A stretch of 64,000 bases of DNA from Amphiscolops sp. MND2022 (Eukaryota). The stretch lies in NCBI GenBank assembly GCA_964187785.1, contig OZ076415.1, positions 55,924,001 to 55,988,000 of the forward strand. Direction: 5' to 3'. Below, piece by piece: positions 16,572-47,711 of this stretch. Under the pieces are notes generated by a model that was given only the letters and a program-made list of their open reading frames with translations, did not search any database and was not told the origin of the DNA. Position numbers and translations under genes: made by a program. The first letter of the stretch is position 1. The number at the start of each line of letters is the position of its first letter.

Positions 16572-16819
16572 TAGATAGTGAAATAGAATATTGAACGAAA
16601 TTTGTTCATTTGAGCATTTCAGTTGAAATTTCCAATTATGTTCGAAATTGGAGAGATATTCACTGATTTTTAATTGGAGTCATGCTTGCACAACAGTGTT
16701 CTACCTTCGCTCGGATTCTCATCAGTTAAAAACGCATTTTGATTTCTGTTTCCCGAATTAGAGGTGAAGTTTATTAATTTGTACCCGCTAACATCCTTGA
16801 CTGTCATGCAGAAGATAGT

Positions 16820-18092: not shown

Positions 18093-21000
18093 ATGGCCTT
18101 GGACAAGTGCAAGCTTGTTTTCAGAGGAGTTCCTCTCGATATCAGTGAGGTCAGTTTACAGAATATTAATTACTCTTTTGGTCAATCTTTTCGAATAAAA
18201 CGTCCTGGTTTTTGCTTGGCTTTGAACATTAACTTTGTACGTCTATGACTTGATAATGAGGTAGCTCACATGAAAAATTCTGCCTGAAATACCACTGGAG
18301 TTGGCGATGATAACTAAACGTGATCCTCATAACTTCGAGCTGAAAATCTTGACAGGTCTCTGAAAGGTTTTAAAAAATGAAAACAAAAATTCTCGTTGAA
18401 AGACATCTTTTCCATTTGAAATATTTTCTCAATTGAAATTCTTGCTTTGTGGCCAATTTCTCAAACATATTCAGCTTGGAAGATTGTTGAGCTTTCCGGC
18501 TCGTTAAAAGGACAACCCAAAAAGAAAAAATCTGTCCTTTCAATAATTGTCTTCATTTAGCGTATGACTTAAGTTGGGATGTCTCTCCGGATAAAACCCG
18601 GCCAATAGTTGATTCTGCTTCTATTTTAGAACGATTTCGTGAATTTCATCAAGCATCAATCGGGAGTAACGCCGAGAAGCGTCAACTTGGCCAAGTTCAC
18701 AGTCAACCCGACCAACCAAATGGGGTTAGTTTGTCACTTTTATAATCCTAGCTTCGTCTTTTAGAGCATTTGCAGATGACGTCAACCATCCGCCGAAAGT
18801 CTGGTGATAGATTACTCTCTGAAACAGTATCCGCCTTGTGCTCTCTGACTATTTCTTTGAAACTGTTGAAGTACTTGCTTAAACCTTCTGTCTGCAAACT
18901 TGATACTAAAATCCTGGTTGAATGTTTGTTTTTTTTAGAAAGCGCCGTGAAACAAATGGAGAAAGGTATCATTTAACTGTATCTTCAAAACTCATATTTA
19001 GGTTTCTTGACTGTCGAAATTATGTGAAAACTGAAAAAATCTGCTTGATTAAAATATTTCAATTCCTGAGGTGCGATTTTCATAGGTTTTCCGTTCATTT
19101 TGCCATTTTTGGTTTTTCAAATATTTAAAAAAAAATTTCGTTAAAATGTTTCACCTGACGACCATGATAAAATGTTCATCACGCCTGTGATATTTTATCT
19201 AACTCAGCGAGTCACAATTCGTTGTGTCTATTCAAGTAACACAGCCATAGTCCAAGGGGTGCATTCATTCAAAATTAATAAGTTTGCGTTTACGCAAAAT
19301 TTAAAAAAAGTAAAGTCTGGTTGGAATTGGACGTTTCACTCCGTTAAGTTGTTTTTAAATTGATTTAATCCGAGAATTTATATTGAAAGGATAGGCGAAT
19401 TTTCATCTATAAAAAGATGTTTGGATTTTTCTGATTTGTTTTTACAGTTTCAGATATATTACCGAGACTACAATGATAGCATTACGGGTTTGGCTTAAGC
19501 CTCGCGGTTTCTTACCTCACGGTTTGATATATCTTTGTGCCACTCTTAGCTCTGAATGTGCCTATTTCCCGATGAAACGTGATACAAATCGGCTTAACAT
19601 ATGGTTTTTGGTTATAACCGCTTTTCATGACCTGGGTGAAGTTTTGTCTGCACCAGTAAATGATGTAGCATCGTTTTTTGTCAAGTTTTCTTCAATGTAA
19701 TGCCGGATTATTTGCTGCTAGGAAGCCATTTATTTGGAAGGATATACAATAATATAAGTTAACAGAAGTTTATTAGACTTATGAATATTTCATCCAATCA
19801 GGGCAGAAAATGAGCTTAAGCAGCTCTTCGAGTTTCTGCCCACATCAAAAAAGTTCCGAATTTTTGTTGAGTTACAGAGAATTTGGCGAGTTACTCAAAC
19901 GCTTGATATCTTTGCGTATCCCTGTCTTTGAGCCAGTTTATGCTTGCCGTAATCTATTTTCAACCGATTTCGATTCAATGACAGTCCGACTGTAGGGGAT
20001 AGTCGCTTTTTGCTCCTTCTAGTATAATATGGATGATTACAAGCTGTATTTAGTGAACTGAGAGGTGATTCCATTCTCAATTGTTTGAAAACTTCTGCGA
20101 AAAGAAAGCTCCATTAGGTATATTTCGAATACAGTCATAATTTTGTTCCGTTCAAAAATATATCCAACAGTATCGTACTTCTTTCTGAAAAAAATAGCCC
20201 GTTTTCTTCGTTGAGCCTTTTCAATTTTATATAGATTGTCTTTCGCTTCACTCCCATAAGTCAGTATTCCATGAGAAATTGATTTACCAAACGAATTGTA
20301 GAACATTAAAAGGAATTTTATCGGATAAATTTCGCGAATTTTATAAATCATCCCTCTGATTTGATTCACTTTACGATATGCTCAATCTGATCTTGAAAAA
20401 GTAGTTTTTAGTCGGCGCTTCATGAAGTGAAACGCGACTATTATAGTGACTTTTTTCTATCCACACGAACTGACCAAAATAGTTCTTAAAAGTTCTACAA
20501 AATATTATTGCACTAAATTTCACCATTTGGCCTAGTGAACTGAACCAAAAAAGTTTTTCCAGTTTCTCCGCGTAACATACCATACCGGGCGAGACCAAAG
20601 GGTCCCCCTTTCATTTTTTCTCGGCACTGCGAGACTTTTCTTTCGAAAAAAATTTTCCCCAAAGGGTCCCCCCTTCAATTTTTTGCTGTTTTGGGTCAGA
20701 ATGGATGTTGGAAAATCCCAAAGGGTCCCCCCTTACAGTTTTTTTCGGCACTGAGATTTTTTCCGAAAATAAAATTTTCCCCTTGGATATGGCGCCGACT
20801 TGGGCCGGTCCCGGCTTGTTTTTTCTATTTTACTGCTCAAAGTTGTTTATTCGATCCAATTCCATTTGTAAAAAACATTGATTTCAGGGGCCAGCTTTCA
20901 CCATAGAATTATCGTCTGCAAAGATGAATATTTTGCTACTATTTCCAATATAACTGGGCAAATCATTGATATAGACTAACAAGCCGAGAACGGCCAAAGT

Positions 21001-24000
21001 CGGCGCCATATCTAAGGCTCAAAATTTAAAAGGGGGACCCTTCGGGCTTTGTGAAACTCCAGCTGGTTGCAAAAAATTTGAAAAAGATTTGAAGGGGGGA
21101 CCCTTTGGAGACATGAATCCCTTTGCGATTTTTTGACATCCATTGTGTTGCAAAATATCGAAACAAATGAAGGGGGACCCTCTGGTGCAATCCAAAAAAC
21201 TTCAAAAAAAGTGCTGAATAAAAGTGGGGCTAAGGTGTGTTTTCGAGGTTGTGGACGTCTGTTTTGTTTTTTCTTTTCGTTTTGGACGCGCTTCTGAGGT
21301 TGGAGTTGTTGAGGTTTGAAGTTGTTGAAGTTTGAGGTTGTTGAACAAATGAACAAAAAAGTGGACCTTTCGTGTCTAAAAAAAACTACCCAATATAATA
21401 GTCGGGCACATTTTCTACTAAAATGCGCCGACTAAAAACATGAAAGGTCCTAAGATCGATCCTTGATGCACGCCAGTATTGATCTGTAGTTCATCAGTCT
21501 TATCGTTAACAGTCTCTATATATTGGTATCTATTGGCTAAATTGTCTATCAAAATTTCAAAGATTGGTCCTCTGTAACCATAGGCATATATTTTATTCAA
21601 TATCGATGACCTGGGGTATCGAACGTTTTCTGGGGAACGATAAAACACGCTTGACCCGTTGACTTTTGTCAATTTTTTCTCTTATGTCGTCAGTTACAGT
21701 TCTGATTGCATGAACGCACGAGTTTTTTTCGAAACCCAAATTGCTCCAATGCAAACAATTTACTTTTTACGGAAAACTGAACCATGCGTTTGTACAAAAG
21801 TTTTTCAAAGATTTTGCTGATAGAACATAAACTTATCATCCTGTAGTTCTCTGGAAAAGTTTTATCTCCTTTTTTGAAAATAGGAACAACCTTCGCTAGT
21901 TTCAGGAATTCCGGATTTTCGAGATGCTCATATTAATAGCTCCACTCAGATATTTCTCGATTTCTGGGGAACAGTGTTTCAGCATTTTGTTGCTCAATCC
22001 CTCGTGACCCGTCCTTTTCTTACTTTTAGCGCGATTATTATTTGTGCCACTTCATTTCGTCACAGTAAGTGAGTACCATTGTCTTTTGAAAATTTGGTAC
22101 GTTCACTAGGCTATCGTATCCTGGGACTTCTGCTGATGGGATTCCTCCGATGGATGTGAAATATTAAGTTTTTTGATGTCTGGGATGACATTTTTGGGTT
22201 CATCTTTTGCCACTTGATATTTCAGTGTGTGGTATATGGTTTTACTGGAGGGGTTAAGTCCGGGTTTTTTGTAGTTACAATCTCGCTTTGCATTTCTAAA
22301 TAGTGATGTAACTATATTTCTTTGTCTCTTGTACAAATCCTTGTTACTTGTACAGATCCCTGTTTCATGTTTTTTTTGCTTGTAGTTTTTTCATGTAATA
22401 TATTTCATGTCAGGTAAGAGACACCTGCCGAAGTGATATTTTCAACTTGAGATCTACTAGGAAGCATTCTCTGGCAACGTTATCATTCGATTATAACGTA
22501 TTTAGTTGAAATGGTTTCAGTTTTCGTCGAATTATATGTGAAGGAAGATTAAGGTCGTCCCCGGTTTCTATGTATTTGATTTAAACTTTTTTCGTAGAAA
22601 TGAAATAATTAAAAATAAAAAAACTGAACAACTACAAGTAGAACGAAAACATTTCGAGTAAAAATAACAGGACACTTTTTCATTTGAACTGTCTCTTTCG
22701 TTTCAAAATACTGTGCGATGTTTTTTTGAACTTCGAAAGGGGCCATTAGCTATGGTTTCTGTTAACCAGCATTCAGGGAGTTTTCAAATGTGACTTGAAA
22801 TCTGTTTCTGTCTTGCAGGTTCGTGGAGTTCGACAACGAGAGAGATGCTGGGATGGCTCTGTGCAGCTGCATGCAGGCTGAGTACCTCGGTCACACCATC
22901 ACAGTGAGTTATTTGAAAGATAAACCGAAGCAGGAAGAGTCGACTGCCCATGATCACAGATCCGACTCACAACCACCTCACAACCAGTGATGACCATTTA
23001 AAATAAAACACTGCAGTTTAGTTTCGTTAGCAAGCATTTGTAGTAACGCACAAAAGCACTGGCGTGAGTGTAGGTTATTATGGTATAAATGTATGGTATA
23101 AATAAAGAATTTAAACCCCTTTCAATGGAAGTTTGATATCTATAGAAAATCACCCCTTGGAAGGACCTGAATCTGGAAAGTGTTGAACCAAGGCTCATGA
23201 CATGTTATCTCATTATTGAGTGCTGTCGGCTGCGTTCTGGAGGCTTCTCTCCATTTTCCTCATTTTTCTACCATAAACCATTGGTCATCATTAACAGAGG
23301 TGGAAGACAAAGATTTCAACCTAATTCAAGGCCTGTTACAAACAACCCACCTTTTGCTCCCGTCACGGAGAGCCAGCCAAACGCGCAAAGTGAGTATCGA
23401 ACATAGGAAAAAGTAGTTCATGCAATCAGTTGACTGTAGAGCTCAATTGCGTCATTCAAAGTTGGCAATGAAATGCCCGGAATAAATGGTCATATATGTT
23501 CCTTTGCTCAACTTCGTAGAAATATCTTCGGAATCTACTATCTTTGTTGTTTAGGACAAGTTCAGCGATTAAACAATGAGGAGAATTTCAAGTTGTGTGT
23601 CTACCAAGTTGCCAAAGATGCTGACAAAGTTAGTTCTAACAGTATATGAGTCACGCTCACTCAAACATCTAATCCATCACCGGATGACTTCTTGAGTGTT
23701 GAAAATAAGTTTTCATTTCCCAACAAAATTGAACTCTACTGAAAAACAAGACGGGAACGTCTAAAGTCGGCGCTATATCTAAGGCTCAAAAAGCGCAAAG
23801 TTTTTAAAATTGTAAAAGGGGGGACGATTTCGGCTTTCCGAAAATCCAGTTTGTTGCAAAATATCAAAAAAATGAAGGAGGGCCTTTCGAGACATTTAAA
23901 AAAATTCGAAAATTTTTTTGTAGAAATTTTTTCGAAAAAAAAATGAGAATTTTGAAAGTCTCATAGTGCCGAAAAATTTGAAAGGGGAGACCTTTTGGGC

Positions 24001-27000
24001 TTTTTGAAACTTCAGTTTGCTGCAAAATATCAAAAAACTTGAAGGGGGACCGTTTGGCGACAAAAGAAAATTCGAAAAAAAAGTCGCACAGTGCCGAAAA
24101 AAATTCAAAGGGGGGACCCTGTAGTTCCGTCCGGTTTTGTATCTTACGTTAAAAATTGAGTACACGAAAGGGGGGACCCTTTGCAGTAACTCAGATATGA
24201 TTCCGCTTGCCGGTGCAGTACTTTTAGTAGTTCTGTAAAAAGTGTCCACTACGCATACATTCTGTGGTCTGACGAAAAAAAAAGAAAAAAAACTTGCCAC
24301 TGTAATAGTCGGGCTCATTTTCTTCTAAAATGCGCCGACTAAAAAAAGAGTACGCCGACTTCTGTAGAATGCTATTTCAAAATACAAGTTCGAAACTAGT
24401 CTTGAACTAGGAGTACAAAAGCAACATGAATCAGGGGTACAGCTTCTTTATCGACATTTAGCTGACGATTTTTTTGTTCGTCCTTCGGAAAATAAAAGAT
24501 GAAATCTTAATAGTGGTGTAGTTTGGTTAAACCCATGAAGTAAAGACCTTCAACATTAAAGGCCTGTGTCGTTAGTTGATTTTAACAGTTTGCACTTGAA
24601 TGTCAGTTTTCCATTTTTCCAGGGCGACTTCGAGAAGTTCATCGCTGACAAAACTGGATGTCAACCGACTGATATTTTCTTTGCCCATTTCAAAAAAACA
24701 GTATCAGATGTGAAGAACGCGTGAGTGTCGCCCATCTTGCTACTTTTTTGTTTTGAACTCTGGGTTCTTTGAACTTGGATTTGTCATTGATTGAAAAGTG
24801 TCTGATACTTGAGACTTTTGAAAAAAATAATTCCTTGCAGATTCTGTCTTGATTCTTATGATCTGACAATCGGAAGTGCTTTCGGTGGTAATTACGTCAC
24901 GCTACACTTTCTGACTTCTTTCAAAATCTGTCTTGATCTAAAGACTTGGAAAATTCATGAACACCAGGATACCAAAAAGCTCGATTTGGCGGTTTGGCTA
25001 ACGAACATTTTCAAAGCGCAATATCTGGTAATTTGTTCAGGTTACAAAAAAGTCTCAGGAGCAAAATTCTCTCAAACTTTGAGCTGTTCTCAGCTTTTTT
25101 CGTAGTAACTTTCTGACAAAGCTACATGGCTTAAAGTTCGAAATTTTGCTCATCTTAGCCTGTGATAGAGATGTTGTTGCAATGGTTTTCAACATGGCGT
25201 TTCCAGTTAACCGCATTTTTGGAAAAATTTGCTGTACTCAAAGTTCTGGTAACCAACTGTGAATTGAATGCTCCGGAAAAAGTTCCTACCGATTACATGT
25301 ACACCTTGTTGGCAATTTTTAAACTCCTAGCGTCGCTTTTACAGGTCAAGGATAGTGTGAGTTGAATTGACCCCTAAATCAAGTTATGTGTTAGTTGAAC
25401 AATCTCTGGTTTTGTTATCTCGAAAGTTCGTGTTCCTTGTCTTAAGACCCATCCTAAATGAAGATTGGTTATTGCATCCTGACTCAAATTTTGATTTTCA
25501 ATTATTTGTTCAGTTATGTAAATCGTTTTCCGTCAAATTCTTATCTCTGATTTGTTGGATGCCTTTATCGGGGCTCGAGATTGGCGTCCTCTTTTTTGAA
25601 CGTTCTGCATTTATGGTGAAATTCAGTGTTTCAATGCGTATTTTTCTAGGTGTTCTGTACTCCTTCTTATCAGAAATGCATTATATTCTAATGTTTCTAT
25701 AAAATAGACCAGATCCTCTTTGCTACTCCAGCTAAAAAGTACGCCATTGACAATCTTTTGTTCAATTCGCTGAGTCTAATATTTAAATTTGTATCAGAAC
25801 TAAACTCCGTACCAACTGGATCGCAAAAGTCGTATTTATCCGGAACACTTATTAGTATTTTTGCCGAAGTTTTCATACTAACGTAAATATTCTTGACTTT
25901 AGGTTTGTTACGTTCAAGAATCCAGAAGAGGCTGCTAAGGCGAAAGCCATCATAAATGAAGGCATTTGCTACTGTGGAAGAACACTGCAAGCTGCGTACG
26001 CTTACGCCAAGGAAGGGTTAGTACACAAAAGCCAAGGCTTTTATCCAACGAATAGTCGAAAGTATTGTATGTATGTAACAACATTCAAGCTAATCTTTGC
26101 TGATCCCAAGTTTCAGAGAAGCTGTTGTTGTGCGAAAGTTGTATTGAAGCCAAAGTTATCATATGATTCTTTGCAACAATACGTTGAATTGTTTCAGGCG
26201 TCCCACGAAACCTGCCCAGAATTTCGATGATACTGCGTCAGTGAGAAGCTTTGCCAGCAGCAGTTTCTCAAATGACCATAGAAACAATCCAAGCGAAGTC
26301 AATGGTTACAGCCATCTCAACAGGCAAGTCTTGTGGTCAAACAGTCAGAACGCGGGCAAACATTTGCGACCTTGTTATCTTCAAAAATTGGTCACTCTGG
26401 GTATATCTGATCTTGTCAGACGCATACACTCAGCTAAAAGATTAATCCATGCATGTGCAAGTTGCCTTGGAAATTGTAGGGCTTGATTTTTCTCAGCTGG
26501 TCCAATGGCAAAGTGGGAATACTTGAATGCACGAAGACTGGAGTATGTCCGAATTTTATCAAAAAGCGCTTTTTCATCGTTTTATGAGTTTTTTTGAGCA
26601 GTTTTTTGGTTGGAGCGACTGCGTAACACCTTCATATCTTACTTTAATCACAGGCCCGATTTTAATGCCAACAGGCATTTTGGGACACAAAACTCCAGTG
26701 GCAGTGGCGGAGACATGAACAGGCCAAGATCTTACCAGGGTGGAAATAACAACAGTCATGCAAGGACGAGACCAGTCACTAGTTTCTTGCAACAGTCAAC
26801 GGCTTATACAGAGGACAAGTCATCCTCGGTGACCGGGTCAAGTGTCACTCTGGTGGCTAGTCCTTCGGGTATGAACCTCAACATGCCACCTTTCAACGAG
26901 AAACAGGTCAGTAACAGGCCTTTCATTAATCTTGTCTTCATTTTGCATTTGCTTCTTAGTTGCTTGCTTGTGAATGTCAGACGCTTTTTAGTGGGCTCAT

Positions 27001-30000
27001 TTCAAACGAAAAGTGTTCCTGAAATAATTCTTGTTCGTTTTTAAAGAAATTGAAACTGAGATGTCTCTACCTGAATGTTTACTTGATGAAGGTCCGTAGT
27101 TTACTATTATTTCGTCAAGAGCTCTATTATTGTTGCTTCCGTCCGCAATATTTCAGTTCTGGTTCTTTCTACTTGGGCAGTAAAATAGAAAAAACAAGCC
27201 GGGACCGGCCCAAGTCGGCGCCATATCCAAGGCTCAAAAATAGCCAAAGGACTTCCAAGTGTCAATTTACAGTACTCGAAAACCGAAAAACCAAAAAATG
27301 GACCGAGTGGCGCGCCGGGGCCCGCTAGCGCGAGCCCCTGGCGCGCTAAAAGGGGGACACTTCCGAAATTATCAACATTTTTGTCGCAGTTGAAAGGGGG
27401 ACCCTTTGGAGAAAAAACAAAATTTTCGAAAGAAAGTCTCACAATGCCGATAAACTGAAAGGGGGACCCTTTGGGTTTTTCAACATCCATTCTGTCGCAA
27501 AACAGCAAAAAATTGAAGGGGACCCTTTGGGGAAAAAATTTTCCGAAAAAAAGTCTCGCAATGCCGAAAAAAAATTGAAAAGGACCCTTTGGTCTCGCCC
27601 GGTGTGGTATGTTACGCGGGAAAACAGGAAAAACCTTTTTGGTTCAGTTCGCTAGGCCAAATGGTGCAATAATCTTTTGTAGAACTTTTAAGAACTATTT
27701 TGGTCAGTTCGTGTGGATTGAAAAAAAGTCACTATAATAACTTCATGAAGCGCCGAAATATTGGTTTGGTGTTTTCGAACTATTGCCTCCCTTAATTCGG
27801 AGGATGGTGCTAGTTGTCGTAGCGAATTTTGGAAAGTAATTAAGGGACGTTTTTCTATAGCTCCAATGTCCTAGATTCTCAAATCGATAATTCCGTATAT
27901 GGGAATCTTGAACCAAAGTTCGCCTTATATGGATCGCCCTCGGTTAAGGCCTATTAACAGCCAAGTTTTATAAATAAGGACAGGACTTCTAAGTGCCCAG
28001 AAACAATTTGAGAAAATTAAAGTGAAAATAACAAAAAAACTAAGGTTATCCTTCGGTGAAAAACAATCCCAAAATCGCAATGCCGAAAAAATATGGGGAC
28101 CCTTCTGTCTCATCGGCTTTTGACCTTTGAGTGGAATGTTTTAAAAAATAGTACCCTGTTGGGAATCGAACTTTGTCCTCCTGCTTCGGAAGCCAACGCA
28201 TTAGCTCCTAGACCAATTGGACGTACGGCGACAACTCATATCAAGCGACAACTCATATCAGGCGACAAGTCATATCAAGTTGAAAAAGCGACAACTCATA
28301 TCAATCAAAACTCATATCAGAAAAATAAAGTCTGTAAAAGAAAATTTTCTCCAAATATTTCATTAAATAATTAGAGAAAATTAGGTAATTGATAAGGAAT
28401 TATTCGAGATTAAAAAATAGTAACAAGAGTTCATGGTAAATATCAGTGTAATTTTGGAATTTCTAATTGCAGTTAATTATGTTTGTTAATAATTTGTTCT
28501 TGAAGTAAAATTTAGGTATTTGTAACCTCTTGGCAAACTTGATGAGTTGTGGCTTTTTCCATATTGATATGAATTATCGCTTGATATGAGTTGTCGCCTT
28601 TTCAAATTGATATGAGTTGTCGCCCGATATGAGTTGTCGCTTGATATGAGTTGTCGCTATGCCCCAATTGGAGTCTCAGTCACTCTGTTTTCGCCACATT
28701 CGGGCCTGTCTCAGAGTGACTGTAATAGTCAGGCGTCCTTCGTTGCATGCATGTCGGCGATTCGTCGAGGAATGTTTTTTTCTTTATTTTCCCGAAAGTT
28801 TCATCTGTGCTAGTTAATTTGGTGTTTGCTTGTGCACCAAAAACGAGCACTTAGAGTTTCCGAGTTTTTTTAGTTGAAGTTTGAATAAAGTTTGATCTTT
28901 GCGTTTCAGTCGGACAACAGAGGAGGACAAAAGAAGCTTTTTTCGCCGAATAAACTTTGCATTATGCCGCTCCCGGCATCGATTTCAAACGAGAAGGTTG
29001 AAGCTCTTTTTCCCAATGCTTCGCACATAGTTTCCGTTTCACTGACGAAGCCTCGAAAGAATCAGTTCGCTACTGGAGAAGTTTGTTGCGCTTTTGTTGA
29101 GTTCGACTCGGAAGAACATTGCACAGAAGCTCTTGAAAGTACCTCCGAAAACATAGAGGTCGAAGGAATGAAGTGTAGAGTTCAAAGAGCAATGGAAAAG
29201 GTAGAAATGATAAAAGTTCAGGTGGGAAGTAGAGTGCATCGAGGGAACAATTTTTCCTTAGATATGGTTTTACATGTTGCAGTCAAATGGTCAAGTTTTT
29301 GTCGGTTTTTCAAATCACCGTAAAGTTGGCTGGCTGATATTTGGATGACTCAGGTTGGACCGCATAGCCGGGTTTCGCTATAAGATCTGAAATGAGACAT
29401 TACCTCACTGTGAATAATGAAGCTGTAAGCCAATTATTTAGTTGAAATAGAAGTTGTACTCTACTTCTCTTATTCTGACCTCCATGTATTGTGATGCATG
29501 CGTTTGTTGAATTCTGTTGTTGTTGGGGGATTTGTTGATCCGCCCATTCTGTTACTGACTGAGTTAACACCGACTGAATTAGTTATAATTGACTTTAAAG
29601 ATTTCGTGCGAAAAATGTGCTTTTTGAGCAACTTTTCATCAATTGTACCATCTCAAGTGAAATTTGCTTTTGCAATGCAGACCAATTCAACCTGAACAAA
29701 TTAATGTCGAGTTTCAATCAATCAACATTATTAGTTCAAAGATTGTTGGCAAAACTGAATCTTAGCGAAAAAAGTGGTATTCAATCTCTTGCTCTAAATA
29801 CTGAGAATTTTGCAAAGATTCTGTTTCTACAAAAATGCGCGAGAGTTCAATTAATGGAGACCAAGATTTGATGATTTTTTTGCATGTGAATGTTTTTTGT
29901 CGAATTCTTACAAGCATGTCTATGAAAATCTGTTCTTGTTCTAATATAGATTACATATAAGAAGATGCGAGTGCCGCTTAAGCCCAATTGTGAGGCTATC

Positions 30001-33000: not shown

Positions 33001-36000
33001 GTATTCAGCTGATTTTCTTGAGAAACGAAAAATCTTAGTTTTAGCACGAGCATTTTTTCTTCCATCATATCTGCCAATAGTTATTTGATGTACTGGAAAG
33101 TACTTTCCACTTGTACTAGCGATTAATGAGGATTTTTAGGCCTGGTGACGGGGCTTGAGAAGCAGGAGTACCCGGGCTCGAGTCCCGCACTGGACCAAGT
33201 TTTTTATATGTCCAAATATAGAGGTGAACCAAAGTGTTGCCCAATTGGTTTTTTCGGCACTGTGCGACTTTTCCACGGTTTTAAACTGTAAAGTCTCCAT
33301 TTAATTTTAAGCAAGGGAAAAGCGTTTTGCGAGCATAGAGTCCCCCTTTGGGTTTTTGGCACTGTACAGCTTACTGAGGATTTTTGTCGGAAAAAAGTTC
33401 TCCCGAAATTTTTCAACTTGTTTTCACATTTTCTGTTAAGGAAAACGTTTTTCGAGTCTTAAGGGTGACCAAGTTATGTGTTGGTACTTTAGGGAAAATG
33501 TGAGTTTTTCTATATTTTTGTTTAAAGCCTAGGTAAAAGACAGACAACTCAGTATAGGTTCACTGCTTCTATTTTTGATGTTTTTAGTTGAGAAAATGCG
33601 TTGTTCGAACCTTAAGGGACAATAGTTGGGTCATTTCGCCACTGTGCGACTTTTAAAGATTTGGAAATTATCAAAAATTCGTGATTGTTATGTTTTAGGT
33701 TCACCAGCCGGGAACGGCCCAAGTCGGTGCCCCCCATTGTTCAAAAAGACACTATTGCTAAAGTTTCATCATTTTACAGTGCCAAAATATAACGGAAAAA
33801 GACCAACTTTTTCCCCGACTGGAAACAACAAAAACTCATTGAAAAAATTCGGTAATTTTTTTTTCGAAAAAAGTCGCATAGTGCCGGAAACCCTAAGGAG
33901 TCCTCTATGCTCGCAAAACGTTTCGTTCCTAGTAAAAATTGAGGGGGCTTTAAGAAAAACAATTTAGAAGAAAGTCGCATAGAAGAACGCTGGTGTTGTA
34001 AAGAATAAAATTCGGATATAGCGTGCTGGACCACTAAGAAAACCTAATACCAAAACGAGCAATACTCATTTTCAAAAAATCTCAATTCCGAAATTTGTAA
34101 AAGGGCAAATTTTGAGTTTGGAAGTATTTCAAAAGGACGCTTTGGGTTCTTTGAAAATGCAGTTTGTTGCAAAATATCAAAAAAATTGAAGGGAGACATC
34201 AAAAAATTTTCGAAAAAAGTCAAAAAACCGAAATGAAAGGCATTAAGAAAATTTGATCAAGTGTGAGACTCGAACCCACATCTTTCTGCTTCTCAGACCT
34301 TAAAAAATCCGGATTGACCTCCGTGCTAATTGGCAGTAGAAGGTACAAGTTACTGAGCAACAGCTTATAAAACTTATAAAATCTGTCAGTTCGTCGGTCT
34401 TGAAAATAGTTTTGAAAAGTCACTACTATAGTATGCTCTTTCTACGAAAGCGCCGACTAAAAAGAAGTCTTTTTCACCCGGAAAGGTTTTCCTTGTTTTT
34501 TGGTAGAAATACCATCTAAGAATACCCTAGGAAATACCACAAATTTCATGTTTTTTCGACATAGCGACGTTTTACCAAAATTCGGCTTTTAAATTTTTTA
34601 GTTGAGAAAAATCTTTTCCCTGAAAGGTCCCTATGAAAACTTTTCTTATCGTACGATTTTCTTTGAAGTTGTTCCTCACTGAACAGTTTACACATCCGTG
34701 TTAAGTTCCTTTGTGTTTTCGATTTTAACCAACTATTTCGGATATTTATCTACGAATAAGCGATGGAATATTCAAAATGCCCGTTTGGGACACTACATGC
34801 ATATATTTATGATCTAGGTATCAGATATATATATATTCCGTTGCTTTTCCGCTGTTTAACTATTTTTCCGTGAGTGTCTATACGAAAAATATCAGTACCA
34901 CTGCGCCTCTTGTTCGGTGTAAGTTCAGCATTATGTAAAGGTTTTCAAATCCAAACTCTCAGCTCTATCCGTTTGAGTCGTGAAATTGGCGACTTCCCCT
35001 TACTAACAAGAAGACCCTTCAATATTTTTTCGAAGTCGAGAAAAAAGTTCAAAGCTTTGAAACTTCAAATGGGTCACCTATGATATGAAAAAAATGGACT
35101 CTTGGATAAATTGGCTCAGTTGTATTCCTTTTCACAGTGGATCACGAGATGAAGCCAAAGTTCTGACGCTGAAGAACGTGAAGTTCGCCAGCTTGTCGAG
35201 AGTGCAGCCAGTTGCGATTCAGGTGATAGAGTACAACAGTCACTTAGACTTCATTTTCGATGTGGTCGACACACAAACGGACCCAAATCTTCAAAGCATC
35301 CTCAACGCCCGCGGTAAAATACATATTTTGTATCGGTTATAGGGCTCATTTGCTTAAAATATCTGTACTTGTTAGTGTTTCATTTCACGCAATTCAGCCT
35401 TAGCGAATTCAATGTGTGATAAAAATTTGTATCCGAAGGACTTGTCAAAAATTTGCTTGAGATGAATCCAAACTTTTCAGTGGAAATCTAAACTTTCGAT
35501 GTGTCAAAACGTTATGTACCAATTGCCCTTGTTGCAACCTAGCGACAGCGCAGATGTAAAAGTGTAATTGGTGTAATGCCTATACCAAGAAGGTGCAAGT
35601 TTTGGTTTCTTGGAATTTGGCTGTAAAAGTAAAGTTGATTATTTGTCTTAAAATCGAGGCCAGTAGAAGAAACGTGTTGTAACAGCTAAGCTTAGTGGTA
35701 TGAGCTAGGAAAAACTCTGTTATAGCCTAAAATGTCAAAGAACGAAATTATAGCAGTGAAATGTGTTTGTTGAAGGTGAGAGAGCGCCTCGCGTGAACTA
35801 CGTGCTGCCAGGCGAAGTACTGCTGACAACATTGCCCGGCAAGAGAGATTACTCAAGAGTGGTTGTCCGCAACCCGGACCTGCCAGCCGGTGTTAGCGTG
35901 GAAGATCTGGACACTTGCGCCCAGTTCTCAGTGGCCCTGCAGAACTTGACAGCCGGTGTTAGCGTGGAAGATCTGGACACTTGCGCCCAGTTCTCAGTGG

Positions 36001-39000
36001 CCCTGCAGAACTTGAAGCTGATAAACGAAGAATGTCTCGCCTCCCCTGTTAAGAGGTTCCACGGTGCACTCATCAAATGCCAGGTAACTTGTCACTAGTC
36101 ATTGATGTCATTATTTTTATACTAACCTTCGCAAACTGGTTGATATGGATGAAAGTTATCCTCGATTTGAGTTCTCACGGAGATAGTCCCGATAAGTTAT
36201 CATGAGTCTAAATTTGAGATACCCTTTCTGCAGTACTCAGGCTCCTGGCTTCATGGGATATAGTTTTTGAGGAACAAGCAATTCGAGAGTTTCAGGTTAG
36301 ACAGAAAAGGAATTCAGATGTTTCTGAAGCTTTCCATGCTTCTCCTCCCAATGAGCAACACGTTCGCTTCAAACTATTTGAGGCTTGCCGTTGACTGATT
36401 ATAATTGGATTTTTGCATTTTCTGTCGTTTATTGTAACGATTTGACCGCTGAATGAGTTGAACGGATTGTTTCAGCCACTTGAAGATCAGTTGAACGAAT
36501 TCAATGAAATCCTGGAGCAGTATCTCATTGGAGACGAAGATAACCTTGGAAACCAATATATGATGGTTTTCAATCAGCTCTTCAACTGGGTCGATATCGA
36601 GATCATAAATGGTTAATCATTCTCACTGATCGTCATGATTATACAACATGGATGCACCACAAAACGGCCGATTTTCTACACTGTGGCATAACTAGGGTCG
36701 ATTTGGAAAGTGTGACAAAAAGGTCGATTTGGAAATTAACTTGGAAATTAACCGAATGGCTGATTGCCAAATATAACAAAATGACCGATTTAGTGAGCAT
36801 CATTTTATCGAGTTAGTTAACTTGAATTGGTTGGATCACTCGGCCTTCATCCTTCCGGGGCCCTTTGCGAAAAATTTCAAGGTATTTGCATTTGAGTCCT
36901 TTTTAGTCGGCGCATTTTAGTAGAAAATGTGCCCGACTCTTACAATGGGTAGTTCTTTTTAGACGCGTAAGGTCCACTTTTTTGTTCAAAAACGTCAAAC
37001 CTCAACAACTCGAACCTCAAAAGCCCGTCCAAAACGAAAAGAAGAAACAAAACAGACGTCCAGAACCTCGAAATCACACTAAGGATCCCCCCATAGCTCC
37101 ACTTTTTTTGAAACTTTTTGGATTGCACCAAAGGGTCCCCCTTCATTTGTTTCGACATTTTGCAACACAATGGATGTCAAAAAATCCAAAGGGTCCCTTT
37201 TACATTTTTCGGCACTGTGACACTGTTCAAAAATCTCATTTCAAAAAAGTCCCCAAAGGGCTCCCCTTCATTTTTTTTCATATTTTGCAACCAGCTGGAG
37301 TTTCACAAAGCCCGAAGGGTCCCACTTTTACAATTTTGAGCCTTAGATATAGCGCCGATTTTGGCCGTTCTCGGCTTGTTTCTCTATAATGTTAGGTAAA
37401 GTGTTATGTATGCGTTTTAGATGTGAATAACGTGAAAGACACGCTAACTGAAGTCATGATCGAAACTGGGCTTGGCTTTACTCCCAAGACCAACGAAGAT
37501 ATAACCAGAGAAATGTGTATGGATCCACTCAAAATCGACAAGGTTACTTACATCAACTGAAACTTCCCAAAAATCATCTATTATTTCAGTTTTTGCACTA
37601 GTGGATTTCATATCTCTTTTAATTTGATATTAAACCCGCCTGCTCTGATCCTCATTCGGAGTTGAATCTGTGCCCCGTTAAACACCTTTCGGAAAATTTA
37701 AATCGCAATAATTAGTTTAGGACAAAAATAAGCTTGGCTCCAATTCGAAGCTCTGCGCTGTGCGTCAGAGGATACCGAAACACAATTCCTCAGTTGAAAA
37801 TTCGTCTGCACATCTATTGCAGAGACGTGTACAAGGGAAGGCTGTCGCGATTTACCACAAACCAATCCCGGTGCTCGTCTTGACGCAATCCTTTGTGATT
37901 TTATTGCTTTTTGGGTGTTTTATTTCCACAAATTGGTCTTCAACTTCCTGAAGTTTTCCCATTTAATTTTACTGGATCGTTGTTGACACATCTAGGAGCC
38001 TTTGTATCTTGCAGCGTGATGGCACCACTTCCAACACTCAATTTCAGACTGGGTCTCTCGTTGAATAATGGGCAAACATCACTTTTTGCAAAAAAATTCC
38101 GTATTTCATAAATGTACAGTCTGAATTGTTGATCAGCGGAGTTGAGTAAAATTTTCACACAACTGCGTATTGATTGGGATTCTTGTCCAAAACTAGAACA
38201 AGCAGTGAAAAGATTCCGAAGATGTATTTCTGATTTTTTTGCAATGACTATATTTGAAGAGCCTGGGTAATCTCAAAAGTAGTTTTCTGTGAATGTTTGC
38301 AGGGCGACAAGACGTACGAATGTATTTTGTCGAATGTGATTTCTCCGAGTGAGATGTACGTTCACGACACCAGCCAATCCGATCTGGACTTTCTCGAGAC
38401 ATGGAGCCATGGAGAACTCATCACTGTGCCCAACTACCATCCTTTCGTTAGTCTCCAATCTTTCATTCCCTCTGAAATATTCAAGTTCTAATAATTCTAC
38501 TGCATCAAAATATTGAGAAGTAGTGGTCTTGTCAAATCGTGACATTTCGGAATGCAATTTTTTGCCAATTACGTCATAATAAGTTTTAGAAACAGCTAAA
38601 TACGTTTACTTCAAAAATACCTGATCAAATTCTGATGACGACTTCCCAAACTAACAAGCTGGGAACGGCCGAAGTCGGCGCCATATGAACTTATAGAACT
38701 TTTTATTTATCATACAGTGCCAAAAAATACAGATGTGGTACCCTTGAAATCATCAAAAAACCCCAACTTTTGAAAAAAAAGTTGAATAGTTCCGAAAAAC
38801 CCAAAAGAAGACCCTTTAGTCTCGCAAAACCGAAAACTTCAAAAAAGTGAAAGGATTTTTTACGAAAAAGTCGCAGTGCCGAAAAAAAATCAGAAGAGGT
38901 GCCCTTTGCTCTTATGGACTTTGCAAAAAAAGTTCTTTCCGGTATACCCACCCTTACAGCCACGCACTCGTCCTCTAGCTGAGTGGCCGTACTCAAGTCG

Positions 39001-42000: not shown

Positions 42001-45000
42001 TGTGGATAGAAAAAAAAAGAGTCACTATAATAGTCGCGTTTCACTTCATGAAGCGCCGACTAAAAATTGTACAAGTCCGGGACTTGTGATCGCATAGTTG
42101 CTCGAATTGTGGATCTCAATCTTAGCTAGTTTTGTTATTTTGATTTCATAATTATTAGAAAGACGTTTGATTATCGCTATTGAAAGTAGTTTGATTATTG
42201 AACATCTCTTTTTGTGATCGATTGAGTTGGGCCGAAGAGCATACTGTAGAGAAACCTAGCCAAGCTACTTAACGCAAAACACTTATCCACCAAACAAAAA
42301 CTTTTTTCTGTTAGAGTTAGATTCTTGGGAAAGTCTCTACGCTCTCGCAATCTAAATTTTCTACATGCCCCTACTAAAATCGCCGATATGGATTGACGAA
42401 CTTTTCAAGCCTTGTCGATAACTTTGTGAAAGATATTGAATAATTTTTGGAGAATTTTGTTTCCTGAGAGTCTGGTCAAATTTGTTTCCTATAGTTGAAG
42501 TTTATCGAATTTGTGGCTTTCAGGAGTTTTTAAGCATAACAAAATTCATGAATTTAATTCTGGATACACAATATAATACCAGCAGTTTTTCACATACGAA
42601 TTTACTGGATCCAATAATAGATTTCATGTTTAAAAAAATCAGGTAAAAAAGATAATTCTTTTGATGGGTTCCAATAATTTAATGAATAAATTAAACTATA
42701 TAATTAGATTGGTCACCGCTGAGCAAGTAAGTTTTTTGACAGTGATCGCGCGAGTATTGAATTTCGACTTTTCAATTGCTCGCTGAGAGCTTTGACTACT
42801 TCCAAAGAAGTGATTCCAAAGTTTTTTTCGTTTAGTTGCATTATTTTTTGTTCGAATGTACAAGGGTGCTCCTTCAATCGAGCAACAAAAGCTTATAATC
42901 CAAGATTTGGATGATATGAATGAATCCTAATACGTTTGTACTTTTTTCCGAATCTGAGATGATTTTTGAAATGAGCACTTTTCTAACAGTGTGCATTGTA
43001 CCTTAAAATAAATAATTTGAATTGTACCCATGATAGAGGACGAGAAATAAGCGCTCAAAGTTGAAAAAGTTGGGTAATGTCACACTTTTTTGACAGAAAA
43101 TAGTGAAATTTGCCTGTTGAAATTGAATGGCGATAGGCTTCGTTTCGCCTAAAGAACGTTTTAAATTTCACGAAAAGAATTCACAAAATTAATTCTCATC
43201 AAATCTCACTAAAAAAGCTCGTGAAAAAAACATGGTGTTTATTTTTGATTACAACACTTCGTATTTCTGTAGCCCTTCGAAGCAGTTTGTACATTACTGG
43301 ATGGCCAATGGTGTCGGGCGAAAGTGCTCAGTGTGGATGAGGGACATGCAAATTTGTTCACTGTCGACTGGGGCGAGTATGCCAGGCAGCCGTTCAATAA
43401 AATCAGACCGGCGCCTCGCAACTGGATCTACAACCCCGTCACTAACAATGTCATCCTGGGACAGGCGGTTCACTTATGCTTGGAAGGTACGTTGCATCGT
43501 TCATGCATTCAACAAAAGCATGGACAATGTGTGCTTAGGAGTCTCAAAAGCCACGTTTTGCACCACAATTTGCCTTTCGTCTACGTTTAAATTCACTGGC
43601 AGTGCCATTTACTTGGAATCCCGAAGGTGTAAGCTCAAATGTCTCCCTATTTATATGTGGTGCCTGCGCGTAGTTTTTAGTAATTCCAGACTAGCGGAAA
43701 TATAACATGCAAAATTGAACCCAAAGTAATGAGTCAATGCATTCCATGATTTGATTGTGTCATTAAATAACAGTAGTTTTTAGCATGCTTGTGCTGATTC
43801 AATGAAAGTAAGACATACAATGGATTGGTATCAATTGATTTTTGTCCGTCTGTTTTTCTCACCTTTAAAAGACGTACATGTACTCAAAAAGTTGTGCTTT
43901 GTGTAGTGTTTTTAGTAGACCGAGCTTTCATTGTTGTGTTGGTGTCCTTTTCAATCCGTCTGTGTCAGCTAATCGCGAAACTTAACTAGTATTTTGAAAT
44001 TTAAAAATAAGTTTGAACGTTTTTAGTAGGAACTATTGTCATTATTACGGTTTTTGTTTCGATCATAATTTTCGATAGCTAATTCTGCAGTATTTTCATC
44101 TTGCACAACAATTACGGAAAGTCTACTTTTGAGACCACCAATTCTAAGTATTTTGGCTTTGTGAGATATTGAAGGTGTCTTTTTCTTTTGAGGATTGGGA
44201 TTGTACGGGATAGACGACTGTTTCACAAAAATGTATATGAAATCAACGATTTGGCTATACGAATTGCTATCAATCAATATACGAGCGATACGGAGCATCG
44301 TTTTCTGACACTATCACATCTTTGTTCTCACCGAATTTCGAAAAATCAAATGGGATTTAGAAATCACAGTTTTTATTCAATGAACTTCATTCTCACAATG
44401 CATCGATTGATTGGGTATATGAGGTATATGGAAAATCAGCCTTTTAATGTTATTAGAGAAAATTCGCATACTACTGCGGGGGATCTTCAAGATCAAATTT
44501 GCCGAATTTGGCATTATTCACGCTATCGAAGCGCGAACAGATCTTCTTGGACTTGTTCACTGTCGCATGAAGCCGATTGAGTCTTCATCACTACTTTTTG
44601 TCATCACTACTTGTTATTTTTTTAAGGAGTGGACCGGTCTGTGAAATATTCAACAGAGCACTTGAATATGTTCAGAAGCACCATTTTACCCCGTGACAAT
44701 ACAATCACTGTGCGGGTAGTTGACCTGAACAAACGCTGCCGATCACACCTGTGTCAGGTGTTTCTAACTGACCAAGCCGCTTTCAAAACCCCGAATGTGC
44801 TGCAGATATGCCACCAGAAGAACATCATTCCTAGTGATCCTCTTCCTATGCAACAACCAGGTATAAGTCACCTCTATTTGCGTGGACAGATTGTTGTATC
44901 TAACACAGATGTAAGGTTCCGAGGATGCATAGGTGTTACATTTTTCTCACTTCTAATTTAACAAAGTTGCGTTGAGCAAAAATTGAATCTGCTCATTTTC

Positions 45001-47711
45001 AGGTTTTTCTCTATTACTAGCATTTACTGGGAGCCGATTTTTGAGTTTCGCTTTCTGTTTAGAAAATTTTTCCAAAGTCCTGAAATTGACGCTAATATCT
45101 GCCGGAATAATTTTGTTTCACCTAATTTTTTCGTGCTTCAGAGCAGTGCGCTGACTTTTTGTAGTACTAATTTTCTTCATACTTTCGTTTCGGATCAACT
45201 TATTAATATTTCTGCTTTAGCAGGAATATTATTGTAACCTCAAACTTTCTACTTATTTTTTTTCAGAACAATTTTTGTCGTGATACTGAATAATTCAGAT
45301 ATTTTGTTCGGCAGTGACTGTAAGCGTGGGAAAGCTGCCGACAACAATTCAATTCTAGTGCGATGGAACGAGCGAGTGGTAATTATCCATTCGTATGCTG
45401 ACTTCATTGAGATGAAGCGAGCGAATGTTCGTAATTGTGCTTTCGTTGCCCCGAGTTATTGAGATGAAGCGAATGAGTGTTAATTATTCGTTCGTTGAGA
45501 GCTTCGCCTGCATTCAAATGCGAATGCGAAACTTCGTCTACGCTTAGTAGTTATATTTTCTTTGGTCCGAGAAGAATTAAAGACGGTGTAAACTTGTACA
45601 GTGATTACATGTAATTGTGCGCTAAATAATGATTGAACAAGAGTGTATTGGTATTCCAGATATGATTTTTATTTATGATTTTTTTGTTTCAAAAAAAATA
45701 AAGATTAAAGCAGAAATAGTACTGAGCCCCGGAGGGGCCTATTTTTGAGAAATGATCACTGTGGGGCCAACTGTGAGATATGGACACCAATTTTTGACAA
45801 ACATTTCGGACGATAGATAGCTGTCTTCATACTCTAGTAATACCATGTATTCGGAAAAGTTGTTGAGCCAATAGTTTTGACATTTCCAAAAAAAATGAGT
45901 TTTTGCGAACTTGCACGATCAAATTTCAAGGTGTTTGTAAAAGCTGTTTTGTAAAGCTTCTTGTGACATCTGTTTCATATAGCCATTCAGTTGAATTAAA
46001 CTTTCCATCAAAACTTTTTGTTTCAACTGCTCAAACCTAATTTGATATGTGCACTCTTCGTACTGTCTGCAACAATTACTTCCCATGAAAAACTGACACC
46101 ACCATTATTTAAGTTGCATTTAAAGCAAAAATCAATCTTCACCGGAAAAGTTTCATACCCAATCTTTATTCATGGAAGTTAGTTTTATGTATGAAGAAAG
46201 TTGACTTTTACTTAGTTTGGCAATCATCAGAATTCTGAATTACTAGTATGGTAAATGAGTCGTGGTCATCTATCTTGACAGACATCGAAATGTAAATTTC
46301 GAAGCATGTTTTAGTACCTAAAGCAGATATATGAAGCAAAAAATTTGGCTCAGTTTTGATCATGACATTCTCAAATAAGCAAAAATATAAACTAGATGGA
46401 ATTCTAGGTGGCTTTTGCATATGTAATTTTTCGGAATTTTACAAAGGTTTTAGATGAAATTTTTTGTCCGAAACTTTTTAGCAATCAACAGTGCAAACCG
46501 TTTCTCCTAGTGTACTGAACGAGAACTTCGTTGTTCCTTGCTTCCATATATCATATATACCATGTGAATCGAGGCGATCAAACTGACGATGTGACCATCC
46601 TTGTAACTTCATGAAAAGGGCAAAATTTCGGTTCTTTTTAAACAGCGTCTCAATTTACTTTCCCTAAAATTTAAAATTTTGACAAATAGTCGTTTCTTTT
46701 CGAATCGTGGATTCTTTTCGAAAAAATGGGGTATAGATGTATGTGGGTTAGACTTAAATGTCGCGTCTCAAATTATCTCATCCGCCGAACAATGACAGAT
46801 CTATCGAGATGAGTCATATTTGTAAAAAACTTGTTGCTAGATTTTTCCTGTTTTTCGCGGAATACTTGATTGATCTCAGTAGATCTGTCTTTATATTTTT
46901 CCAAATGCTTTTACGGAAGTTGGTTTTACCTTTTCAGTTTGGTTTGAAAAATACATCAGGATAATCAGTGTTCTTTTATTCTTTTTTCAGCAGTTGCTGC
47001 TGCGCAATTGGGTAGCTCTGCTGTTGCTCCGGAGCCAGAGCAAGAGCGCTCCGTTTCGATGACCCCATCTTCAAGTTGCAACGAGAGGAGAGTGAATGGG
47101 GTCGCTGGACCACCGACCTCCACACCCAAACAAGGTTTATAATTGACTAGTGCCACGGACAGACCCATTATCATCCGTTTTATAGGTCGTTCTAGATCGA
47201 AATTGCGATGACGTCAAAAATCTGTATAAAAATCTGTAGCTTTTAGTATAAAAAGCTTGCCAAAAAGTATCAAATAGCTGAAAGACAGTGTACTAAAAAT
47301 TACATAAGGCCTTCTAATCGACGCAATGTCGCTTCCCTACTTGACGACGCTTCTCGAGCTAATTGTATACTGAACAAATTGTAATTTTCCAATCAAAGAT
47401 TGATTTCATTTAACTTCCCTGTCGATATCAGCCATAGATTTTTTTCGAGTTGTGCTTTAACAAATGCCGCTCTGACGATATGATAGAATCGATGGAATAA
47501 CCAATGCCTTTTACGATGGGGCAAATTTATTGTGCATTTGATCTTCGTTTCAGAGTCCCTTGCAATTCCTGCGGAGTTTAATGCAGACGATTTCGACGTG
47601 CAACAAGAAATACTGAATCTTCGAGAAGAAGTTAAACAGCTTCGTGAGGAAGTGGCCGATCTTAAAATCGAAAATGCTGATTTAGTTCGGCTCGTCACTG
47701 GGACCAATTAA
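18093..47711 (+). CDS. 3xRRM + 2x extended Tudor + C-terminal coiled-coil protein (21 exons)
   Basis: Phase-consistent exons: 18093-18149, 18630-18724, 22819-22986, 23298-23389, 23555-23628, 24623-24720, 25903-26016, 26198-26323, 26654-26906, 28910-29200, 30857-30929 (or 30974), 32765-32897, 35138-35313, 35776-36083, 36476-36611, 37421-37542, 38303-38446, 43273-43486, 44627-44860, 46991-47134, 47554-47711. RNP motifs: KLVFRGVP/MGFVEF, KLCVYQV/NAFVTF, KLCIMPLP/CAFVEF. Tudor 2: VISPSEMYV..DGQWCRAKVLSVDEGHANLFTVDWGE..QAVHLCLEG. Tudor 1 is divergent: PGEVLL..DYSRVVV..VSVEDLDTC..ALIKC. An assembly gap lies in intron 11. Confidence 0.82.
20408..20820 (+). mobile_element. HINE-like family A copy
   Basis: 5' ttagtcggcgc..cgcgacta (subTIR plus partial inverted repeat); internal aaagggtcccc modules; 3' gcgccgact + gccg-gtcc-cggc + ttgtt. 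Confidence 0.85.
20978..21438 (-). mobile_element. HINE-like family A copy inserted in LINE RT
   Basis: Both termini are present; removing it rejoins the codons P-F-M-F-L-V-Y-I within a T-run. Confidence 0.88.
23745..24344 (-). mobile_element. HINE-like family A copy
   Basis: Plus strand aacaagacgggaacgtctaaagtcggcgc ... aatgcgccgactaaaa. Confidence 0.85.
27193..27758 (-). mobile_element. HINE-like family A copy (with internal GC hairpin)
   Basis: aacaagccgggaccggcccaagtcggcgcc at 27193; degenerate 5' end cttcatgaagcgccga at about 27755. Confidence 0.8.
28219..28664. mobile_element. MITE with gcgacaactcatatc subterminal repeats, copy 1
   Basis: Ends ggacgtacggcgacaactcatatcaagcgacaactcatatc / gatatgagttgtcgcttgatatgagttgtcgctatgccc. 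Flanked by a ccaattgg direct repeat (28213-28220, 28664-28671), so the TSD is 5 bp (caatt) or 8 bp depending on boundary choice. Confidence 0.8.
31419..31900. mobile_element. piggyBac-like MITE
   Basis: TTAA-ccttaagttgacc ... ggccaggttaagg-TTAA: CC/GG ends, TTAA flanks and a short imperfect TIR. Confidence 0.55.
32062..32261. other. Assembly gap (200 N)
   Basis: Run of N characters. Confidence 1.
33703..34463 (-). mobile_element. HINE-like family A copy (diverged); related fragments at 33230-33650
   Basis: ccagccgggaacggcccaagtcggtgcc at 33703; gcgccgactaaaaa at 34450; contains a tRNA-like segment at about 34255-34310. Confidence 0.7.
35884..36015 (+). repeat. Perfect in-frame 66-bp tandem duplication inside a coding exon
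   Basis: cagccggtgttagcgtggaagatctggacacttgcgcccagttctcagtggccctgcagaacttga occurs twice (35884-35949, 35950-36015). Confidence 0.97.
36901..37380 (+). mobile_element. HINE-like family A copy
   Basis: ttttagtcggcgcattttagtagaaaatgtgcccgact ... gcgccgattttggccgttctcggcttgtt. The internal sequence is shared with 20978-21438. Confidence 0.88.
38653..38905 (-). mobile_element. Family A 3' fragment
   Basis: aacaagctgggaacggccgaagtcggcgccatat plus internal modules; no 5' end seen. Confidence 0.6.
39272..39461. repeat. Minisatellite, 6 units of 31-32 bp
   Basis: (a)aatcagctaagtcag[t/a]gtcgatctcgtagag repeated head to tail with no spacers. Confidence 0.95.
40752..41373 (-). mobile_element. HINE-like family A copy (first of a tandem pair)
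   Basis: aacaagatgggtacgtctaaagtcgacgc at 40752; 5' end aaaagcgcctactag at 41360-41373. Confidence 0.8.
41378..42065 (-). mobile_element. HINE-like family A copy (second of a tandem pair)
   Basis: aacaagccgggaccggcccaagtcggcgcc at 41378; tagtcgcgtttcacttcatgaagcgccgactaaaa ending at 42065. Confidence 0.88.
45205..45746 (+). mobile_element. HINE-like family B, copy 2
   Basis: Same termini as 13021-13570; 3' stem-loop gcccc-gga-ggggc followed by ctattttt. Confidence 0.8.

Follow-up and report, generated by a model that had tools for sequence, protein, structure and literature searches.

The pairing of PIWI proteins with particular RNAs is decided by extended Tudor scaffolds. Few of these scaffolds carry an RNA recognition motif (RRM), and those that do, the long isoform of Vreteno and TDRD10, are insect-specific or of unknown function. 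The silkworm protein BmVreteno forms dimers and contains an RNA-binding RRM and three extended Tudor domains, two of which have no intact aromatic cage (PMC10711660). In Krimper, which also contains a dimerisation domain, the cage-less first extended Tudor domain (eTud1) binds unmethylated Ago3 (PMC8249470). An extended Tudor domain that reads symmetric dimethyl-arginine (sDMA) is defined by four cage aromatics and a conserved Asn (PMC8249470). In this study, we describe a gene of Amphiscolops sp. MND2022 that very probably joins RRMs, two extended Tudor domains, and a C-terminal coiled coil in one protein. The gene lies in a 64,000-nucleotide stretch of contig OZ076415.1 (assembly GCA_964187785.1, positions 55,924,001 to 55,988,000 of the forward strand), which is called the window here and to which all coordinates refer unless stated otherwise. 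The window is animal DNA, and its introns are large and filled with repeats.

An intact, single-copy protein-coding gene exists at this locus. Twenty-one exons at 18093-47711, all on the plus strand, splice into one continuous open reading frame (ORF) of 3,258 coding bases and 1,085 amino acids, which starts with the ATG at 18093 and has a single, terminal stop codon at 47709-47711. Exon junctions were set by splice sites, intron phases, and comparison with the orthologous locus of a related species. The locus is single-copy in the 1.07-Gb genome, and no retrocopy revealing the mRNA structure was found in the Amphiscolops sp. MND2022 genome. The domain order is a divergent RRM pair, a Ser/Asn-rich linker, a canonical RRM, a Pro/Ser-rich linker, two tandem extended Tudor domains, a short tail, and a C-terminal leucine-zipper-like coiled coil. 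Support is firm for RRM3, Tudor 2, and the coiled coil, and RRM2 and Tudor 1 are probable assignments. For the start codon and the first half of RRM1, which come from modelling, it is weak. A preliminary description of the window had proposed three RRMs, two Tudor domains, and a coiled coil. All of these pieces do join in one ORF, with the first half of RRM1 present as a model only. The peptides on which that description was built sit in stop-free segments of the plus strand at 18.0-47.7 kb, and the strings quoted for Tudor 2 (QWCR..FTVDWGE), Tudor 1 (DYSR..VEDLDTC), and the coiled coil (QQEILNLREEVKQLREEVADLKIENADL) were all found in the window where it had placed them.

The orthologous locus of the related species was found on a 431-kb contig, ctg88442, of the European Nucleotide Archive (ENA) assembly ERZ26859043. 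A 77.8-kb stretch of this contig was fetched, of which 71.8 kb was merged into one N-free sequence. The contig shares exon order and strand with the window from the second half of RRM1 to the coiled coil, with protein identities of 34-81%. From exon 3 on, the relative's model comprises 15 exons over 53 kb of gap-free contig, and it encodes a 1,005-amino-acid ORF with a single stop codon. Intron phase is identical at every junction common to both species. The relative is without four introns of the window, so that exons 3 and 4, 8 and 9, 13 and 14, and 19 and 20 are each one ORF; because the relative fuses these exon pairs, the corresponding joins in the window are fixed. The four introns absent from the relative lie at 22987-23297, 26324-26653, 35314-35775, and 44861-46990, and the intron at 35314-35775 is also present in a third species (P0029, ENA ERZ1742291). 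No alignment was obtained between the introns of the window and those of the relative. In all modules, the proportion of non-synonymous differences between the two species (pN) is 0.11-0.49 versus a saturated proportion of synonymous differences (pS) of 0.7-1.0, which indicates that purifying selection acts on every module. Tudor 1 is the best conserved module, with 76% identity to the relative, and RRM2 and the coiled coil are 64% and 55% identical, respectively. The earlier proposal that one gene links the RRMs, the two extended Tudor domains, and the terminal coiled coil is thus supported, and this gene is conserved.

By layout, the encoded protein appears to be a new variant of the RRM-plus-extended-Tudor scaffolds, set apart from Vreteno, TDRD10, and Krimper. 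Like Vreteno of Drosophila and Bombyx and like Veneno, it has N-terminal RRMs followed by tandem extended Tudor domains, some of which are cage-deficient; in Vreteno the RRM binds RNA, and the protein self-associates and acts as a scaffold (PMC10711660). Vreteno carries a MYND finger between the RRM and the Tudor domains and no zipper, whereas the protein described here has as many as three RRMs and a coiled coil at its C-terminus but no MYND finger. Its order of RRM3, linker, and Tudor 1 matches the RRM, linker, and extended Tudor domain of vertebrate TDRD10 (PMC12147562, Table 1). In contrast to TDRD10, which has one RRM and one Tudor domain, it contains a further Tudor domain, two additional RRM-like domains, and a zipper, the two proteins being compared by layout only. 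TDRD10 is also much shorter than the protein described here. The protein would resemble Drosophila Krimper, a scaffold that dimerises and carries two extended Tudor domains, of which the cage-less one binds an unmethylated PIWI protein (PMC8249470). Unlike the protein described here, in which both cages are degenerate, Krimper has no RRM, an N-terminal dimerisation domain, and one full cage. The preliminary description was thus right that the layouts of Vreteno (RRM, MYND, and extended Tudor domains) and TDRD10 (RRM and one extended Tudor domain) both differ from this one. The surprise is moderate, because a survey has already reported 12 unnamed, mostly lineage-specific Tudor groups (PMC12147562).

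The N-terminal part of the protein is encoded by exons 1 to 10. Pfam scans were run exon by exon, with curated cut-offs of 20.7 bits for RRM_1 and 23 bits for TUDOR. Exon 1 (18093-18144) is modelled from sequence reading and phase fit and contains the ATG and an RNP2-like strand of RRM1, KLVFRGVP. Exon 2 (18630-18732), also modelled, would encode helix 1 and strand 2 of RRM1 and ends at a weak donor, TTT/gtcact; only a phase-2 donor fits exon 3. The two exons read like RNP2 and helix 1 of an RRM, an assignment that is weak. Exon 3 (22819-22986) encodes the second half of RRM1 (FVEFDNERDA..HTITVSY) and a linker, and it is 50% identical to its counterpart in the relative (E 1e-15), with the same acceptor phase. 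Strand 3 to strand 4 of RRM1 gave a partial Pfam match of 14.7 bits (22799-22987) and an hhalign probability of 74% over 32 columns, and the language-model look-alikes of exon 3 are RRM clusters (0.90, 181 shared features). An internal donor at 22903 (ACA/gtgagt) was dismissed, since its phase does not fit exon 5 and both species keep an open, alignable frame past it. Exon 4 (23298-23389) encodes a linker, which in the relative is continuous with exon 3 within one ORF.

RRM2 is divided over exon 5 (23555-23628; strand 1, FKLCVYQV), exon 6 (24623-24720; helix 1 and strand 2), and exon 7 (25903-26016; RNP1 to strand 4). These exons are 63%, 51% (over the match), and 64% identical to the relative, respectively, with the same splice phases. 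Exon 7 gave a partial Pfam RRM_1 match of 14.4 bits (25856-26227); for RRM2, hhalign returned 89% over 60 columns, and an RRM profile built for this study scored 14.8 bits over positions 2-59. RRM2 is a probable, divergent RRM, which aligns to an RRM profile and retains AFVTFKNPEEA as RNP1. A Ser/Asn-rich linker follows in exon 8 (26198-26323), which in the relative is continuous with exon 9, fixing the junction. The intron after exon 8 (26324-26653) is of the GC-AG type, with the donor CAG/GCAAGT in the textbook AG/GCAAGT context. Exon 9 (26654-26906) encodes a low-complexity linker that is 53% identical to the relative, and its donor is in phase 0 in both species. The intron between exons 9 and 10 is 2.0 kb in the window versus 21.7 kb in the relative; the longer intron contains fragments of a DNA_pol_B_2 (Polinton-like) element. 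Exon 10 (28910-29200) encodes the whole of RRM3 and is in phase 0 at both ends. RRM3 exceeds the Pfam RRM_1 (PF00076) cut-off with 24.2 bits on 28889-29320, its hhalign probability is 98.9%, and its best PDB match is nucleolin (8.6e-6).

Tudor 1 is spread over four exons and follows the motif order of Tudor 2. Exon 13 (35138-35313) encodes its N-terminal strands and helix, is 71% identical to the relative, and is one ORF with exon 14 there. Exon 14 (35776-36083) encodes the core (DYSRVVV..VSVEDLDTC) and is 66% identical to the relative over the match, with an internal duplication treated as a gap. The C-terminal SN-like part lies in exon 15 (36476-36611; 52% identity, same phases), and the end of the domain (DVNN..ETGLGF) together with the inter-Tudor linker lies in exon 16 (37421-37542; 72% identity, same phases). 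The language-model look-alikes of Tudor 1 are Tudor clusters, with values of 0.93 for the relative's exon (198 of 256 features) and 0.92 for the core of the third species (196 features). The hhalign comparison of Tudor 1 with Tudor 2 returned a probability of 0.1%. Taken together, Tudor 1 is likely a Tudor domain.

Tudor 2 is firmly assigned by its sequence as a standard extended Tudor domain of the "T3" type, divided over three exons. Exon 17 (38303-38446) encodes the N-terminal strands (YECILSNVISPSEMYVHD) and is 68% identical to the relative, whose exon matches positions 4-28 of the Pfam TUDOR profile with 14.3 bits. Exon 18 (43273-43486) encodes the core (DGQWCRAKV..LFTVDWGE), with which the domain exceeds the Pfam TUDOR (PF00567) cut-off at 27.7 bits (43273-43587) and at 30.9 bits in the relative. 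PDB matches of Tudor 2 are Tudor-SN and TDRKH (0.01-0.07). The C-terminal SN-like part is encoded by exon 19 (44627-44860), which is 70% identical to the relative and forms one ORF there with exon 20 (46991-47134; 68% identity), the exon of the Pro/Ser-rich tail.

The aromatic cages of both domains are degenerate. Aligned to Drosophila Tudor-SN, the cage of Tudor 2 shows Y to C, Y to T, Y to W, and N to E replacements, and the first position is Leu by eye. In Tudor 1, which was assessed by motif reading only, one Tyr is kept (DYSR) and VEDLDT replaces F.DYGN. On this reading each Tudor domain retains one of the four cage aromatics and is without the Asn, which places both outside the definition of an sDMA reader. 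The partial cage of Tudor 2 and an apparent loss of the cage in Tudor 1 had been noted before, and that view was borne out for Tudor 2 by alignment and for Tudor 1 by the motif. A MYND finger was not found: there is no CxxC motif in the model of either species, at most 5 Cys per 45 residues, and no zf-MYND match in the exon scans.

The last exon, exon 21 (47554-47711), encodes a heptad coiled coil and the stop codon. The coiled coil is conserved between the species, and the exon is 49% identical to that of the relative (E 9e-14). In the predicted homodimer, the two chains are parallel and in register, with a score of 0.57 versus 0.02 for the best control. Three dimer runs agree in 100% of contacts, and the predicted local distance difference test (pLDDT) value at the partner is at least 80. 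Of 30 proteins solved as same-chain pairs, 21 reached the mark used for dimer models, compared with none of 23 proteins solved as single chains; among eukaryotes, 17 of 29 pairs did so. The model thus supports self-pairing of the tail.

Relatives of the two halves were searched separately. The RRM3 exon was compared with 1.84 billion cluster representatives by an exhaustive HMMER search. The matches were the ORF of the window itself, two ORFs of exon size from a single ENA assembly, the protein P0002, and generic RRM proteins. Among these representatives, none of the 27 RRM3-like proteins contains a Tudor domain, and no full-length relative was found. A word-index search with Tudor 1 yielded relatives in three sampled species only. 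P0002 is a complete 599-amino-acid transcript ORF of another species (Logan SRR19327882), and the Pfam RRM match of its family is weak. Proteins of this type are paralogues with two RRMs that are 45-47% identical to RRM3 over tblastn matches (48% in the library search) and share the motif PRKN..GEVCCA.VEFDS. Unlike the protein described here, they have a coiled-coil and low-complexity N-terminal region, end after the second RRM, and carry no Tudor domain. A copy of this type is located on another chromosome of the same genome (G000:C4:26262822-26265824). RRM3 occupies a whole symmetric phase 0-0 exon, apparently likewise in the paralogue, and exon shuffling between the two genes is therefore possible.

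We consider the chances about even that the locus is, as a whole, one gene for a modular, dimeric RNA-plus-protein scaffold acting like Vreteno or Krimper. In such a protein, the tail would pair two copies as a parallel dimer, the RRMs would hold RNA, and the two cage-poor extended Tudor domains would dock partner proteins without needing sDMA. The docked partners would most likely be PIWI-clade or other germ-granule proteins, and the protein would work as an RNA-plus-protein adaptor of nuage-type granules, as Vreteno or Krimper does. By analogy, a PIWI-interacting RNA (piRNA) or germ-granule setting is the most likely one; it is favoured because most animal genes with multiple extended Tudor domains act there (PMC12147562).

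Several observations weigh against this proposal. Both cages are degenerate, so the sequence does not imply PIWI binding. Extended Tudor proteins also work outside the piRNA pathway, as SND1 and TDRD3 do. Tudor 1 has neither a Pfam match nor a PDB match (phmmer, three-species profile), and its AlphaFold2 model, with a pLDDT of 38.7, is unusable. The first half of RRM1 (18093-18144 and 18630-18732) is modelled only, the count of three RRMs depends on it, and counterparts of exons 1 and 2 were not found within 20.7 kb upstream of exon 3 in the relative. The coiled-coil result may reflect generic zipper behaviour. An RNA run covering the locus was not found in the sequencing-run search, which returned four DNA runs of one sample only. 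Finally, the similarity between the species in the linker peptide of exon 11 is marginal (P = 0.025, shuffling).

Among the alternatives, the one that survives best keeps the gene as modelled and places it outside the piRNA pathway and the germline, as a scaffold of general cytoplasmic ribonucleoprotein granules or of mRNA regulation in which the Tudor domains are plain docking modules. The loss of both cages would suit such a role, as would the example of TDRD10, a vertebrate protein with an RRM and an extended Tudor domain and without known function (PMC12147562, Table 1). However, most metazoan genes with multiple extended Tudor domains of the T3 type act with PIWI proteins (PMC12147562), and in Krimper, and probably also in BmVreteno, extended Tudor domains with poor cages retain PIWI binding (PMC8249470, PMC10711660). 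We regard this alternative as possible but less likely than the proposal above.

The second alternative concerns the join between the RRM part and the Tudor part, which the preliminary description had flagged as crossing an assembly gap. A gap does lie in the join, at 32062-32261, but this run of N falls inside the intron between exons 11 and 12, no coding base is affected, and the frame is untouched. The flanking exons are collinear with the gap-free contig of the relative, where exon order is the same, and no extra exon is needed for the phases to match. On the RRM side, conservation of the RRM3 exon, at both the DNA and the protein level, ends exactly at AAG/GTA, a phase-0 donor, in both species. 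A direct splice from RRM3 to exon 12 (L1) was rejected: the AAG/GTA donor is in phase 0, the L1 acceptors are in phase 1 or 2, and the donors that would fit in phase are weak and differ between the species. All exon candidates entering in phase 0 between RRM3 and L1 were listed in both species. In each species, only one candidate has an open frame between a strong acceptor and a strong donor, namely exon 11 (L0, 30857-30974), which is newly found here, and its counterpart in the relative. The acceptor and donor of L0 are ttttgttttag and gtaagc in the window and tttgatttcag and gtaaga in the relative. Its length is 3n+1 in both species (118 nucleotides in the window versus 112 in the relative), giving phase 0 in and phase 1 out, and it encodes a Pro/Gln/Lys/Ser-rich linker peptide in both. 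Exon 12 (L1, 32765-32897) encodes a Ser-rich linker with 49% identity to the relative (E 9e-6) and a conserved donor, AG/gttaga. A weak RT_RNaseH_2 fragment lies between the L0 and L1 exons of the relative (ctg88442). With L0 included, the chain from RRM3 through L0 and L1 to Tudor 1 is in frame in both species.

On these grounds, the RRM and Tudor parts very probably belong to one gene. The competing view holds that there are two adjacent genes, a three-RRM gene ending just past exon 10 and a double-Tudor gene starting at an unseen exon upstream of L1. It draws on the missing RNA run, on the marginal similarity of L0, on an open frame that continues for 40 codons beyond the donor at 29200, and on P0002, the closest long relative of RRM3, which stops soon after its last RRM. 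However, the read-through tails after AAG/GTA show no conservation of sequence, length, or stop position between the window and the relative, and L0 has strong acceptors and donors and the required change from phase 0 to phase 1 in both species. Furthermore, no conserved Met able to start a separate Tudor gene was found in L0, L1, or exon 13 of the two species, and order, strand, and phases are kept despite very different intron sizes, as between exons 9 and 10. Two separate genes are therefore unlikely.

The core exon of Tudor 1 contains an exact tandem duplication of 66 bp on the plus strand, in which copy 1 (35884-35949) is identical to copy 2 (35950-36015) and 22 residues are repeated in frame. 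The assembled read contigs (Logan) of all four DNA runs, which come from one sample and were compared over 32300-38299, pass from 35883 straight to 35950. The unit is also present as a single copy in the relative and in the third species. These comparisons point to an assembly artefact or a rare allele as the probable source of the duplication, and the true protein is probably 1,063 amino acids long. That the duplication within Tudor 1 and the gap in the locus mark a decaying or mis-assembled, broken copy is very improbable, given that the duplication is in frame and missing from the contigs of all four DNA runs, that 21 exons are without an internal stop or frameshift, that pN is far under pS in every module, and that the gap is intronic.

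The 3' end of an SH3BP5 gene lies upstream on the same strand, at 16347-17332 (Pfam PF05276, 45.5 bits). The last SH3BP5 coding exon extends to 17332, which leaves about 760 bases up to the modelled start codon and places the start of the gene described here after that point. A counterpart of SH3BP5 was not found upstream of the relative's locus within the fetched stretch. Very high-copy intronic repeats occur at 33100-34500 and 36900-37500, with summed contig word depths of 10^4 to 8x10^5 versus about 10-15 in unique sequence. Translated frames of these repeats show a recurring KGPPF- or SPKGPPF-like motif that is present across the window.

A more specific form of the Vreteno- or Krimper-like proposal can be put forward tentatively. 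In this animal group, the protein may take the place of the Vreteno or Krimper type as a lineage-restricted adaptor for piRNAs or germ granules. The dimer would carry as many as six RRMs together with four extended Tudor domains that lack cages; target RNA would be tethered and unmethylated PIWI proteins docked. Part of the gene may have arisen by shuffling of a phase 0-0 RRM exon from the paralogous RRM gene. More generally, a conserved protein with several RRMs, two cage-poor Tudor domains, and a zipper would offer a compact natural test case for Tudor docking that does not depend on methylation and is coupled to direct binding of RNA, in an animal lineage that has been little studied. The gene also illustrates the free swapping of accessory domains in the extended Tudor family.

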